NCBI GenBank assembly: GCA_002104905.1
Contig: MCFE01000229.1
Location: forward strand, 57,435-121,434
Source: Basidiobolus meristosporus CBS 931.73
Taxonomy: Eukaryota > Fungi > Basidiobolomycota
Length of the DNA stretch: 64,000 bases
Direction of reading: 5' to 3'
Under the pieces are notes generated by a model, which was not told the origin of the DNA, did no database searches, and saw only the letters and a list, made by a program, of their open reading frames with translations. How positions within the stretch are numbered: the stretch's first letter is position 1; each line of letters starts with the position of its first letter. Positions 28,189 through 35,065 of the stretch are shown piece after piece. Position numbers and translations under genes: made by a program.

Positions 28189-28407
28189 TTAGACTTTACT
28201 GGCAACGCATTTCTCGCTCATCAGTCGGTCGGCGTATCGAGCAAATGAATGCTGCTTGCAAACTGTCAGGTTTGGGCAGGCATGGGTTTCTGGTAAACGA
28301 TGTAAACCGCAGTATTTATGCTCGCAATATCTACAAACGCCTATGATTCGAATGGCGCGACTAGAGCAGCTTGAGATGTCACACTTCTGAATCTTCTTGT
28401 GGTGCAT
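28189..28407 (-). CDS. AN1-type zinc-finger microprotein (Tmc1-like), 72 aa
   Basis: C-x4-C-x10-C-x2-C-x4-C-x2-H-x5-H-x-C intact. ATG 28407 aligns with the paralogue starts. TATA-like TATATAAAG at ~28517-28525 (minus). The upstream ATG 28497 would give 102 aa. Confidence 0.85.
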   Translation of the reverse strand: MHHKKIQKCDISSCSSRAIRIIGVCRYCEHKYCGLHRLPETHACPNLTVCKQHSFARYADRLMSEKCVASKV

Positions 28408-29148
28408 GAGTTGATTAAAGAACCGTTGTGAAGAGGAATTAAACAAATATTGACTTTTAGGTAAAATTCGAATAGATTGATCCGAAATTTCGTCCATGCC
28501 AGGGATCTAAACCCCCTTTATATAGCATCTGGACAGAGTAATTCCCTTTAATACCCGAATTGGAAAGCACAGTCCTGACACAATCTTAAACTCTCCGAAA
28601 CACTTCTCCCTAAAAGAAATCTTGGCTATATTCCGCCCACTAACCCACTTCCTCTCGTCATTCAATGTCGTTTAGAATCACAAATGAAATGAGTTGATCC
28701 GAATTGCACCCATGTGACGTTCAATAAGCAAGGTCACCGGTGAAATAATCAACAGCCCAGATAGTTACGGAGGGTTCAAACAATGGGCATTCTATTAGAT
28801 TGTGCGGTATCTGCCTAGTCAGTCTCTATAAGCTGCAACTTTGCACGATCACGATTCTCCGCACTACTAGCTACCTTTTGCTACTGAATCTCGCCTTGAG
28901 CGGGGCTCGTAATTCAGGTTCCACTCGCCAGAACGGCCCGAAGGGTGAGGAATCAGGGCTTCAGCATGAACCAGCTTACACTTGTGAAGATGCAAGGATA
29001 TTCCCGTTGAATTTGTTGTACACAATTTATTAAACCTACGAAAATTACAATTAATGGTACATTATTAACTAGAGTACAGGTGAAGTGTAGTCAGCTAATG
29101 GCGCAATATATGCAGCGAATGTGAAAATTGGTAAATTACAAGCCAAGG

Positions 29149-29595
29149 CTAGACCTTACTGGCAACGCACTTTTCACTCAGCAAACGGTCAGCGTACCGC
29201 TCAAACGAGCTTTGCTTACAAGTGGTCAGGTTCGGGCAAGCGTGAGTCTCTGGAAGCCGATGTTTACCGCAGAATTTCTGACTACAGTACCGGCAGTCTC
29301 CGATAATTCGTACAGCACGGTCGGAACATCCAGGCGCAGTGCACTTTGGTATTTTCTTGCTAGGGGTGCCGCCTCTCAACCGCAGTACAAGATGAAGGGT
29401 TGATTCTTTCTGGATATTATAGTCACTCAAAGTACGGCCGTCCTCAAGCTGCTTACCAGCGAAGATAAGACGTTGCTGATCGGGGGGAATACCTTCTTTG
29501 TCTTGGATTTTTTGCTTTACGTTGTCGATGGTATCGGAGGATTCTACTTCCAAGGTGATGGTTTTTCCGGTGAGAGTTTTGACAAAGATTTGCAT
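29149..29595 (-). CDS. Ubiquitin-AN1 zinc-finger fusion protein, 148 aa
   Basis: Canonical 76-aa ubiquitin ([11 protein letters not shown]...LRLRGG) followed in frame by a 72-aa Tmc1-like AN1 finger. The pyrimidine tract and AG just upstream suggest a 5'-UTR intron. Confidence 0.97.
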
Positions 29596-31384
29596 GATGC
29601 TGCTGAAGGAAACGAAAATGAGAGACTGCAAGAACGATGCGCAGTAGAGGAACAATATGGTCTTGATGCCAGCAACAGCGCTCTTAAATAGTGGATCTAG
29701 AATCAGGCCGAAAAATCCGATCGGATACATTTTGTCAACAATTGCATCAATTTCGTGGCTTTATGTTTTGAAGGACGCGTAATTTACTCAGATGATTGTA
29801 GTGTAATCAAATAGTAGCACTCACATGACTGTCACATAAGTCACCACTATTACTAATATACACCTCCTATGGCCAATTCAAACTGGTGCACTGCGATTTG
29901 TCTTATAACTGTAACATGGACTCTGAGAAATCCGTATCATAAGCAGTGGGCATCATCACTATCGGTGGATTGCGAATTGTGAATTGCGAATTGGAACCTG
30001 CAGCACCATTCGATCATTCAGTAATAATCTTTCACACTTGGGGTCCGCAGCGAGGAACTACGAAATATCATACATCACTATCGGTGGATTGGCTGTTTCA
30101 TGAAAAATATGGTTCATTCCGCCTGGAATTGCTGTTATTCATTCAATCTGTTTGGGATTTGACATTCTGAGCCATACACGTCTTTTATTTATCAAAACCA
30201 TTGTAGCGTCCCGAATGCCAATCCGAGAGGCCATCACTGCGCAGGTTCGTCGAGCATCCGAATCTCGTAAGGAATTGGCAATTCTCTGAATTTGGAATCT
30301 TGAAACTTGAGCCACGCTTCACAAAAATGCTTTCCTAAACCTAGTCCCACTTCTCTGGACCGCACAATGGAGCTTCGAGCCTATTGGGACTGGTGGTGCC
30401 AGACTGAAGTCACAAAGAAACCATTAACTTGTGATATTCCCAAACCGCTGACGTTAAGCAGCCACAAATTTGGCAGAACATTTTTGCCTCGGAAAAATAT
30501 CGCTAAATGATATTTACCGCCTGCTGATTGGTGCTTAATTTTAACCCTCAAACATTCTGCTTACTCACTATGACACATCTTCATTGGCCGTGACCACAGA
30601 ATTCTTCCGCTAGAATAAATAGAATACCCGACTCAATGGAATGAGCTCACAGAATATCTGGATATCCATACGATTATGGAACACGACTTACCTGGCAGAG
30701 ATCATGACGTATGTTTTTATGCATTCAATATGGTTTATTCAACTATTGTCCACACGGTAGCTTGCTAGGCCTCGCCTAATAAAACACTGATGCTCAGGCT
30801 GCATATGATTTGGTGCGAATGGTGGCCGGGTATGCCTGTCGCAACCAGCCAAGTCTTGTCTCATACGACCTTGCCTGTACGAATACTGGTATGCATAGTC
30901 TCAGAAGATCCAGATCCCCTCCGGTCCACAGCTTCCGCAAGGAATAATGGTCGGGTGTAGATGCATGAACAAACCTATTTACTCGGAACGCACAGCAAGG
31001 TGCTGATGTCAAGTCATTTCATGTGCGCATGCCATTCGATCCACGTCAATACCTCTCGTGCTGGAACTAATCGACACATACCGAAACCCAACAAACTTGA
31101 TTAAGTTCTTGATGTACAAATGAATAATGCGGAATGATTTAATTATAGTCTGAGATCGATGGAACCCATCCATCGAAATTCAATATCCGAACGGGATTTC
31201 TGGAAAAGATGAAAATCCCGAACTGGATGAAATGGATGGCAGCAAGGTGATATTTCGTCATTAACTTGGTCCTATATATACGTCTATCTGGCCGGTCAAT
31301 CTCTCTAAAAATAATCATCTAATATTTTCCTTCTTGGATCTCATATCGCATACATCTTCTTGACACATACCAATACCACACGCC

Positions 31385-32730: not shown

Positions 32731-33654
32731 GTCATAAGGTATCATTCACCATCTAGCTCAGCATGGCAGTCGAATCATTCCTTGTATTAGATCATTCCAT
32801 CTGGATCGCGGTCATGTAGAGGCGACTCGTAGATTGGAATTTTATACTTAATGGAATCATGCTCTCGCAGCCTTGAGCGACGTACAAATGAATGCTTGCC
32901 ACTGTAACTTGATACCAGATCACTCATTTGGATGACGATTGCATTTGGGAATATGGTTTGGAGATCGTGCTGGAGTCATCGTAGTGTTCGATAAATCGAA
33001 TTTCTTGATAATGGCGTAATGCTGCAGCCATTCGTCTACAACTAAGGTATGAAGGAGCAGTTATTTTTACTGATCGAGTTTTCCTGCTTTGGCCCAAACA
33101 ATCAGGTTCTGTCGAGTCTTTGGTACATATTAGGCACCAGCAAAATGAGTGGGGGTTTGATCACAGGAGCAGACGGAATTAATGGAGTTGCCTGTCTCTG
33201 AGTCGGATACATGTTGCCCCGCATTAGTCACGGTTGGCTTTGATTAAGGAAAACACGTGTGCTCATTTTATCCACCACAAGTCAGAAGAGGCCATAGTAA
33301 CATGATGTTCAGCCAATCATGTCTCAGTCCACAAGCTTCACGCGATAGCTTTGAAGCTGCTCTTGACCGGCAGTGACTCCAAACGCATAGAAAACTGTTG
33401 GTTGTCTCCAGCTCAAGCTCTACCCAGTGATTGGCGAGATCTAGTAGGCCACGCTTCGATACGTGGGAGGGAAGTACCTCTCGGATGAGGCTTTAGGTTC
33501 CTTCGTTACTGGGTGTAAGAGCAAAAGGTATGCGGGGCAGTGGTTAGACCAATCAGGGAGACCCTGAAACCTGGTTGCAACTCCAGTCAGCCATTGGAAG
33601 GGAAGATTCCTTATAAACTGGCTTCAGTTGCCTCAACCTGCTCCTTGGTCTATA

Positions 33655-33780
33655 GGTACAACCTGGCCCGAATTGTGAAACAGTGACCTTGCCAGAAAAT
33701 GGGACGGTATCACGTGGCTCCATTGATGGCAAGGCTGATTGGAGATGAGTAAGTAGCGCCTGGTGGGGCTCATCAATCCC
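33655..33780 (-). pseudogene. Fragment resembling the N-terminus of ACAD10/11-type phosphotransferase (APH) domains
   Basis: IDEPHQALLTHLQSALP...FSGKVTVSQFGPG resembles the remembered IDExAL..L...V.QF..GQSNPTY motif. The downstream motifs were not found. Confidence 0.2.
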
Positions 33781-34837
33781 TCCGGAGTAAATGAGCAGAA
33801 GTTTCAGGGTGAAAATGACTCTGGATGTTCTGGCCATATCCCTAATGCAGCTACGAAACAGCGGGCTCCGCCGACACGAGTGTTCAACGGGGACAACGAT
33901 GCACCAAAGAGTCTCTCTGGCGATCGGTAGACCTGGCCAATGCATCAGTCCACGGCTTGATGAAGCATTTTCTTACCAAAGCGAATCAAACGAACGAGTC
34001 ACGACGACACACAGAGACTCATCTGCGCAAACTTACTCCCTCTGGGTGACACAGCCAATGCAGCTGGGAATATACCTCTGGGTGGCACCATCGATTCATC
34101 TCATAGATGGAAAATAGATTTCCGGATAATTTCCCAACCCTTGATGGATTGGTTGGCAAGGATAAATGTAGAATAAGGGATGTCCAACTAGAGAATGTGC
34201 CTTCCCATTCCTATCGAGTGGTTTTGGCACTGACAAATGTAATACTCTAATTTGAATATAGGTGCCATGCCTTTATTTGTCGAATCACCCACTTCGACAT
34301 GGTGTCATAGACCACGATTGTCCAAATTAGTGCCCAATGATGCCAGGAGACTCACCATTTGGGTTGTGGACTGTAATCGCCGGATTTGGTAGCCGTTTCT
34401 GACGCTGGAAAGTATCACCGTCGATTCCAAGACATCATACGGTGAGAACGTATGGTACGCTGCGGATTCCTGATGCCATGGAAGCAAGCACATTGGGGAA
34501 GAGAAGTATGCTCGGAACACTGAAATTCCACGGCTCGTAAACTTTTCTTTATTCTACGATTTTATTATCGGCCACAATGAAGTACAGGGGCAATGAGGGA
34601 AATCACAGAAATACCAGAACCTGAGTGTGAGCTGAATGAGGTCTATTCAAGCCTTTAATAGTAGTATTAATATACAATATTATATATAGTACAGAGGTTC
34701 GCGAGATTATACTGAATCTAATGCCATAGTTCTATTCGTAATAGCAATATACTGCTATTTAAGAGGCTTTGAATTGCGGGTTGGCACAAAGAGGGGGGAG
34801 GGTTGAAGCAAGCGTCGGTGTTGGGCGTGCGTAGACT

Positions 34838-35065
34838 TCACACTTTACTAGCAACACATTTTTCGCTGAGCAGGCGGTCCGCGTACGTCTTAAAGGAGTT
34901 TTGCTTACAGGTAGTGAGGTTAGGACAGGCATGGGTTTCAGGGAGTCGATGTTGGCCACAAAACTTGTGCTGACAATAGCGACAATCACCAACGATTCGA
35001 ACTGCGCGATTACAACATCCACTAGCGGTGCATTTGGCTACTTTCTTTCCTTGAATCTTTGCCAT
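34838..35065 (-). CDS. AN1-type zinc-finger microprotein (Tmc1-like), 75 aa
   Basis: All zinc ligands intact; TATAAATA at ~35166-35173 on the minus strand; ends EKCVASKV. Confidence 0.9.
   Translation of the reverse strand: MAKIQGKKVAKCTASGCCNRAVRIVGDCRYCQHKFCGQHRLPETHACPNLTTCKQNSFKTYADRLLSEKCVASKV

Follow-up and report, generated by a model that had tools for sequence, protein, structure and literature searches.

A subtelomeric cluster of one ubiquitin-fused and three free AN1 zinc-finger genes in Basidiobolus meristosporus

The stretch of DNA analysed here, referred to as the window, comprises the last 64 kb of contig MCFE01000229.1 (121,434 bp) of the fungus Basidiobolus meristosporus CBS 931.73 (assembly GCA_002104905.1). 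Between positions 28189 and 35065 of the window lie four open reading frames (ORFs) for AN1 zinc-finger proteins, here named A, B, C and D. B encodes a precursor of ubiquitin and an AN1 peptide, and A, C and D encode free AN1 microproteins (Table 1). We consider it fairly probable that the four genes form a subtelomeric family with an AN1 finger and a common tail, that the free copies derive from the fusion, that all copies are maintained by selection, and that their product is a cofactor of the ubiquitin-proteasome/Cdc48 system. The window closes with ~230 nt of TTAGGG repeats at positions 63769-64000; its end is hence taken as a true chromosome end, which places the AN1 cluster 29-36 kb from the telomere.

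Four AN1 genes and a second, syntenic cluster

The initial annotation of the window had described four AN1 paralogues, one fused to ubiquitin and three free ones of 72-75 aa, which keep the eight zinc ligands and a common tail and end in the stop codons TAA, TAG, TAA and TGA (A to D). All of this is borne out. The Pfam zf-AN1 profile (PF01428) matches the four ORFs with 46.0-51.0 bits, above its gathering cut-off of 27.9 bits, with E-values of 4e-12 (A), 1.5e-13 (B), 1.6e-13 (C) and 5.6e-12 (D). Their alignment has 45 invariant columns, including the shared tail of 28 residues and the eight zinc ligands, which are six cysteines and two histidines spaced as C-x4-C-x11-C-x2-C-x4-C-x2-H-x5-H-x-C. 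The ligand columns are also invariant in 92 aligned relatives, and the pattern is present in 123 of the 125 relatives listed from the family search described below. The tail that follows the finger, ..C[KR]Q..F..N..KL..EKCVAxKV, is found in all four copies and in nearly all of these 125 relatives, and it ends in EKCVASKV in copies A-D.

Copy B additionally matches the Pfam ubiquitin domain (E 1.2e-32). It is the only copy with the layout of a natural ubiquitin C-terminal extension, that is, a 76-residue ubiquitin ending in RGG with the tail in frame, and the first residue after Gly76 is a threonine. Three other loci encode a ubiquitin identical to that of B. As the RGG motif is intact, and in line with established knowledge of ubiquitin precursors, deubiquitinating enzymes would be expected to cut the precursor after Gly76, yielding one ubiquitin and one AN1 peptide. 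The free genes begin at this predicted cleavage point, as had been proposed; the starting methionines of A and C align with the residue that follows Gly76 in B, and D is longer by three residues.

The 72-residue peptides of the four copies are 69-79% identical in pairs. Among A-D the proportion of synonymous differences (pS) is 0.74-0.96 and hence saturated, the proportion of nonsynonymous differences (pN) is 0.11-0.21, and likeness at the DNA level is limited to ~170-180 nt of coding sequence. The suggestion that the locus makes the same peptide with and without ubiquitin therefore holds in so far as fused and free forms are both present, but the peptides are not identical; they are the products of old paralogues. 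D is 96% identical to the protein P0018. Scans of the window with Rfam and for tRNAs gave no matches.

A second, syntenic cluster, L001, is located on contig MCFE01000126.1 of the same assembly, with the gene order KH-domain gene, D, E, C, B, A, RGS gene. E is an extra AN1 copy of 71 aa, and a fifth copy corresponding to it was not found in the window. With a coding identity of ~78%, L001 had at one stage been regarded as the orthologous locus of another species, a view that was rejected because the two clusters share one assembly. The comparison is hence one between old duplicated segments, and the inference of selection is unchanged by this.

As a pS above 0.75 in most pairs rules out a Jukes-Cantor estimate of dS, pN/pS ratios and Fisher tests were used. 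Between counterparts in the two clusters pS is again saturated (0.79-0.98), and pN/pS is 0.02-0.13 with Fisher p values of 1e-21 to 1e-68 (values for each copy in Table 1). The purifying selection postulated in the initial annotation is thus confirmed. Between B and its L001 counterpart, ubiquitin is 100% identical. In sliding windows across both clusters, identity is 70-88% within coding sequence and ~40% outside, with the switch at the ATG and at the stop codon. A 30-codon in-frame extension upstream of A, which would give a 102-aa product, is not conserved and contains an in-frame stop in L001, so that A is taken to start at MHHKK. By eye, this extension had seemed to resemble the C-terminal half of ubiquitin, an impression that was dropped, the extension not being conserved. 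Considering the saturated synonymous sites, the low pN/pS, the drop in identity at ATG and stop and the TATA boxes kept in both clusters, A, C and D are, as judged by sequence comparison, selected stand-alone genes. All four copies would be older than the duplication of the whole segment and would have been retained since by purifying selection.

The ubiquitin-less copies might instead be decaying relics of fusions, without a function of their own. A and C evolve faster than B and D, with end branches of 0.10-0.13 compared to ~0.015 in the tree described below and pN values of 0.114 and 0.068 compared to 0.02; moreover, copy E of L001 lacks a counterpart in the window, and A is unannotated. 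Decay is nevertheless difficult to reconcile with reading frames that are all open, with eight intact zinc ligands, with a pN/pS of 0.03-0.13 at saturated synonymous sites, and with start codons and TATA boxes that are retained in both clusters. The relic explanation is hence strongly disfavoured, and we give it hardly any credence.

Two syntenic clusters under one accession could also stem from a mixed or hybrid assembly, in which case the comparison would be one between species and not between old duplicates. The two contigs indeed differ from each other as much as from Basidiobolus ranarum, with pS saturated throughout. Such synonymous saturation was seen in all Basidiobolus comparisons (window, L001, L003-L006), for paired loci within an assembly as well as between B. 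meristosporus and B. ranarum, and there was no sign of recent gene conversion in the ubiquitin-coding parts of the compared loci. However, a second type of locus (see below) is present twice in the independent B. ranarum assembly, too, and the genus has been proposed to have undergone gene or genome duplication (PMC3281927), with which the paired loci seen here fit. A mixed assembly is therefore regarded as improbable, and the two clusters are treated as old duplicates; the inference of selection holds either way.

Family range and origin of the free copies

The ubiquitin-AN1 fusion is not peculiar to this locus. A search with a profile built from ubiquitin-less members (E below 0.001) returned at least 272 relatives of the AN1-plus-tail family from many lineages. 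In most of the 125 relatives listed, the finger and the tail are preceded by a single or double ubiquitin or by a head that is ubiquitin-like but diverged. They include members from Zoopagomycota (Syncephalis), Mucoromycota (Cunninghamella, Spinellus, Calcarisporiella), Blastocladiomycota (Allomyces, Blastocladiella, Paraphysoderma) and many chytrids, and, outside the fungi, from the cryptophytes Guillardia and Rhodomonas and from Acanthamoeba. In the protein atlas, the commonest phyla among clusters with ubiquitin and AN1 are Ascomycota, Basidiomycota and Mucoromycota. B. meristosporus itself has at least 11 family genes, distributed over two clusters and two single loci.

A tree calculated by a quick method from 50 rows and 70 columns of finger and tail unites all 13 Basidiobolus copies in one clade, with a value of 99 in the Shimodaira-Hasegawa-like approximate likelihood ratio test (SH-aLRT), among relatives that are mostly fused to ubiquitin. 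C and D are a supported pair of lineages (SH-aLRT 97), and a group of chytrid proteins without ubiquitin is placed elsewhere in the tree, apart from the Basidiobolus clade. Since the 13 copies form one clade among mostly fused relatives, the free Basidiobolus genes probably arose within the genus from a ubiquitin-fused ancestor. A, C and D would accordingly be descendants of such a fusion that have lost the ubiquitin part and would now be single-exon genes under TATA promoters of their own.

Other loci of the genus are in line with repeated loss of ubiquitin. In P0005 of B. meristosporus (locus L006), the head is only 75% identical to ubiquitin, with 19 of 76 residues changed, and the pN of the ubiquitin moiety is 0.14-0.16 compared to 0.01-0.03 in the other loci. 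In P0004 of B. ranarum (locus L004), 37 residues between two Gly-Lys pairs are missing from the interior of ubiquitin, with the reading frame intact. Despite the decaying ubiquitin, both proteins have a conserved AN1 tail. Both L006 and L004 are copies of the second locus type mentioned above, which comprises genes for a protein kinase, a ubiquitin-AN1 protein, a Ras-like GTPase, a 271-aa protein and a GINM1_N protein, and is found twice in B. meristosporus and twice in B. ranarum. A single genus therefore holds a small zinc-finger protein with an intact, a drifting, a truncated or no ubiquitin head, each version under selection, and the locus and its relatives amount to a natural experiment on the purpose of the ubiquitin part.

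Promoters, gene models and surroundings

As the initial annotation had noted, each free gene has a TATA box of its own. It precedes the ATG by 109-117 nt, and the spacing is similar in the second cluster, with 94-112 nt (Table 1). Since the motif occurs only ~1.25 times per kb, both strands together, the presence of six out of six boxes at a similar distance is not attributable to chance. Upstream of B, no TATA box was found within 400 nt in the window.

Upstream of C, the palindrome TTCTGGAA lies at -187, and at -175 in the counterpart; it resembles two units of a heat-shock element but is not the canonical three-unit form and counts as weak evidence. The block around the palindrome TTCCAGAA upstream of D reads TTCCGAAA in the counterpart, so that the motif is partly kept. 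Three-unit heat-shock elements were not detected in the promoter scans of the copies, and motifs for the stress response element (STRE) and AP-1 are scattered and not conserved. Within 400 nt upstream of any copy there is no proteasome-associated control element (PACE, the Rpn4 site), which is uninformative, because Basidiobolus may not use Rpn4-type control. Downstream of D, an A+T-rich non-coding block is ~80-85% identical to its counterpart compared to ~40% in the neighbouring non-coding DNA, and judging from this conservation it may be part of the 3' untranslated region or a polyadenylation element.

The public annotation lists B (148 aa), C (72 aa) and D (75 aa) as genes with a single exon, and for the product of A no gene is recorded. 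The expectation that such small ORFs escape annotation hence proved right for A and wrong for the other three. For the second cluster, a public model of 181 aa, P0001 (L001:13602-14853, 'ubiquitin-domain-containing protein'), fuses the A counterpart by splicing to the beginning of the B counterpart, from ubiquitin up to tail residue 19. As B (13602-14048) and A (14635-14853) are both complete ORFs with their own stops in L001, and the joined linker is not conserved, P0001 appears to be a chimeric model of two genes.

The free ORFs could also be exons of longer or read-through transcripts, with P0001 as an example. The tandem arrangement of B and A on one strand, 741 nt apart, would allow this, and the Joint Genome Institute (JGI) model of the other cluster joins the two. 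Against it, besides the complete ORFs in L001, stands the stretch upstream of the ATG of A that P0001 takes as coding, which is not conserved, is ~40% identical and has an in-frame stop in L001. In addition, tblastn at E-values up to 5 detected no ubiquitin remnants upstream of A, C or D, and C and D are annotated as single-exon genes. We therefore consider transcripts of this kind very unlikely, and A, C and D are best described as separate genes. As regards annotation, A, a selected copy of 72 codons, is absent from the public record, and P0001 is apparently a chimera of two genes.

Between the RGS gene and copy A the two clusters differ in length, with ~9.6 kb in the window (18600-28100) compared to ~1.3 kb in L001. 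The extra stretch holds an annotated Velvet-domain gene and otherwise few long ORFs. The RGS gene of the window is a single-exon ORF of 457 aa with a C-terminal RGS domain; its N-terminus gives a weak match, below threshold, to class C seven-transmembrane receptors, and the ORF may encode a receptor-RGS fusion. A dispersed repeat of ~350 nt, with copies that are 77-88% identical, occurs on both strands of both contigs, and an ORF for a copia-type gag protein is situated near copies of this repeat. Two adjacent genes for CHAP-domain proteins (bacterial-type amidases) lie beside the second AN1 cluster and have no window counterpart in the aligned stretch.

Table 1. Positions of the AN1 genes, their counterparts and other features. 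Positions refer to the window unless a locus is given; pN and pS are from the comparison with the window copy.
Feature	Position	Strand	Remarks
Copy A, free AN1 microprotein	28189..28407	-	72 aa (MHHKK...), stop TAA
Copy B, ubiquitin-AN1 precursor	29149..29595	-	148 aa, stop TAG
Copy B, ubiquitin part	29368-29595	-	76 aa, canonical, ends RGG
Copy B, AN1 tail with stop	29149-29367	-	72 aa plus TAG, no spacer after ubiquitin
Copy C, free AN1 microprotein (protein P0020)	31385..31603	+	72 aa, stop TAA
Copy D, free AN1 microprotein	34838..35065	-	75 aa, stop TGA
A counterpart	L001:14635-14853		pN 0.114, pS 0.89, pN/pS 0.128
B counterpart	L001:13602-14045 (compared)		pN 0.020, pS 0.87, pN/pS 0.023
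C counterpart	L001:12079-12294		pN 0.068, pS 0.79, pN/pS 0.086
D counterpart	L001		pN 0.023, pS 0.84, pN/pS 0.027
Fusion with diverged ubiquitin, P0005	L006:8272-8718		B. meristosporus
Fusion with deleted ubiquitin, P0004	L004:6028-6363		B. ranarum
TATA box of A, TATATAA	28518..28524	-	117 nt upstream of ATG; counterpart TATAAAA at -112
TATA box of C, TATATAT	31273..31279	+	112 nt upstream of ATG; counterpart TATAAAA at -98
TATA box of D, TATAAAT	35168..35174	-	109 nt upstream of ATG; counterpart TATATAA at -94
Palindrome TTCTGGAA upstream of C	31198..31205	+	two-unit, heat-shock-element-like; within a small conserved block
Palindrome TTCCAGAA upstream of D	35214..35221	-	within conserved block AAATATAGATTTTCC
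Conserved non-coding block TGTATATTAATACT	34655..34743	-	A+T-rich; ~95-185 nt downstream of D stop
ORF with RGS domain	17191-18564	-	457 aa, single exon
Velvet-domain gene	about 22224-23409	-	annotated
Dispersed repeat, ~350 nt	1320-1668, 4482-4824, 6056-6407, 10393-10741, 12135-12485, 54956-55302; L001:5380-5731
copia-type gag ORF	11570-12130
CHAP-domain genes	L001:2574-4463		two adjacent genes

Fold, inferred function and comparison with known systems

In sequence, the finger comes closest to the AN1 domains in Zfand1 of mouse and ZFAND2B of humans (E 1e-4 to 7e-4). An AlphaFold2 model of D, built on the 92 aligned relatives, has an AN1 core with a predicted local distance difference test (pLDDT) score of ~90, followed by a helix at residues 50-69 and a less confident end. 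The ten best Foldseek matches of this model are solved AN1 domains with probabilities of up to 1.00, among them those of ZFAND2B, Zfand1, Cuz1, ZFAND1 and proteasome-bound ZFAND5; all E-values are above 0.001, since the domain is small (40 residues). Apart from the ligands, the tail contains two near-invariant cysteines, C53 and C70 of D. They are located at opposite ends of the predicted helix and are hence unlikely to form one intramolecular site.

Arsenite induces Cuz1, Tmc1 and AIRAP, all of which are proteasome partners, and Cuz1 also associates with Cdc48 (PMC5035049, PMC10616229). The LDFLP motif, which marks the Cuz1/AIRAP/ZFAND1 subfamily and is reported to be missing from Tmc1 (PMC5035049), is absent from copies A-D as well; between the first and second Cys pairs these read S/N-(D/S/N)-R-A-(V/I)-R-I-(I/V)-G and thus fall outside the Cuz1/ZFAND1 subfamily. 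By analogy, we infer that the AN1 peptide acts as a Tmc1/ZFAND-type cofactor in the ubiquitin-proteasome/Cdc48 system, and the fusion to ubiquitin across so many lineages is an argument for a role in the ubiquitin system. The fused gene would tie the supply of the cofactor to that of ubiquitin, whereas the free genes would allow its separate regulation, possibly under stress. If the tail is indeed a Tmc1-like proteasome cofactor, the fusion would couple ubiquitin supply to an accessory factor of the proteasome.

Several observations weigh against this interpretation or parts of it. The presumed proteasome link rests on the domain family and the ubiquitin fusion, and the putative likeness to Tmc1 on the shared absence of LDFLP, with Tmc1 taken as described in the literature (PMC5035049). 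A contrast between a housekeeping fused gene and inducible free genes is not established, as the B counterpart in L001 has a TATA box at -66. The heat-shock-like motifs are only partly conserved TTCnnGAA palindromes of two units. Look-ups of transcript-derived contigs with the exact products of A, C and D gave the genome record only, and nothing for A. Finally, with its 70 columns, the tree does not resolve many forks within the Basidiobolus clade and hence does not fix how often ubiquitin was lost.

The tail could alternatively be a small basic zinc protein that acts with ribosomes or RNA like eL40 and eS31, with ubiquitin serving merely as a chaperone for its production. In the classical natural ubiquitin fusions, the partners are small ribosomal proteins that bind zinc (PMC8122580, PMC6721733), the automatic names of relatives include S27Ae and L40e, there are weak, sub-threshold matches to the L37Ae zinc ribbon (E 0.07-0.18), and AIRAP is named an RNA-associated protein (PMC5035049). 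However, all significant matches in sequence and fold are AN1 fingers of ZFAND/Cuz1 proteins, the names S27Ae and L40e are most likely due to the ubiquitin part, and the lasting free copies show that the protein can be made without ubiquitin. A ribosomal or RNA-related role thus appears unlikely, and a cofactor of the ubiquitin-proteasome/Cdc48 system is the favoured assignment. A more far-reaching version of the latter, which we put forward as tentative and rather doubtful, is that the family constitutes a third ancient class of ubiquitin precursors in fungi, Amoebozoa and Cryptista, which would yield ubiquitin and a Tmc1-like proteasome cofactor in a ratio of 1:1. Basidiobolus would then display a stepwise uncoupling, from intact over diverged and internally deleted to no ubiquitin, with the free copies under separate, possibly heat-shock-type TATA promoters as a stress-inducible arm.

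Natural ubiquitin fusions are commonly presented as a set of two, eL40 and eS31. B is similar to these in its single N-terminal ubiquitin, the lack of a spacer and the small basic zinc-binding tail, and release of the tail by deubiquitinating enzymes is presumed for B, too. In contrast to them, its tail is an AN1 finger and not a ribosomal protein, and here ubiquitin was dispensable over evolution, as it was lost, truncated or diverged in paralogues.

Tmc1 of yeast (YOR052C), Cuz1, AIRAP (ZFAND2A), AIRAP-L and ZFAND1 are likewise small AN1 proteins; copies A-D have about half the length of Tmc1. The initial annotation had likened the finger to Tmc1, and a possible resemblance of the family to the Tmc1 finger and the beginning of its tail is a lead. 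The copies described here differ from Tmc1 and its relatives in the two additional near-invariant cysteines, in the C-terminal EKCVASKV and in promoters without a PACE site. Xenopus An1 and human ZFAND4 consist of a ubiquitin-like domain and a C-terminal AN1 finger. The order of their parts, with an N-terminal ubiquitin fold and a C-terminal finger, is that of B, and the relatives P0005 and P0016 carry diverged ubiquitin-like heads, but B has a true, predicted-cleavable ubiquitin and no long middle region.

The closest known systems are other natural ubiquitin-AN1 fusions. For Guillardia theta, Sibbald et al. 2019 (PMC6332867) list two proteins, 145 and 199 aa long, in which ubiquitin is joined to a 'zinc ring finger like' partner, and the Guillardia proteins P0064 and P0100, which are among the matches of our family profile, agree with them in length. 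Martin-Villanueva et al. 2021 name zf-AN1 as one of the domains found most often in unusual ubiquitin fusions (PMC8122580). The fusion family is hence already known and widespread, and the locus is a local expansion of it. In the literature searched, no paper was found that studies the AN1-plus-tail family, its tail or its ubiquitin-less derivatives. B has the layout of these fusions, with ubiquitin ending in RGG, a short basic linker, the AN1 finger and the 28-residue tail with EKCVAxKV, although many relatives carry two ubiquitins and B only one. What distinguishes the locus from the known fusions, and is new here, is the clustering of the fusion with three ubiquitin-less derivatives, together with the evidence for their origin within the genus, the different degrees to which ubiquitin has decayed in sister loci and the unannotated copy A.

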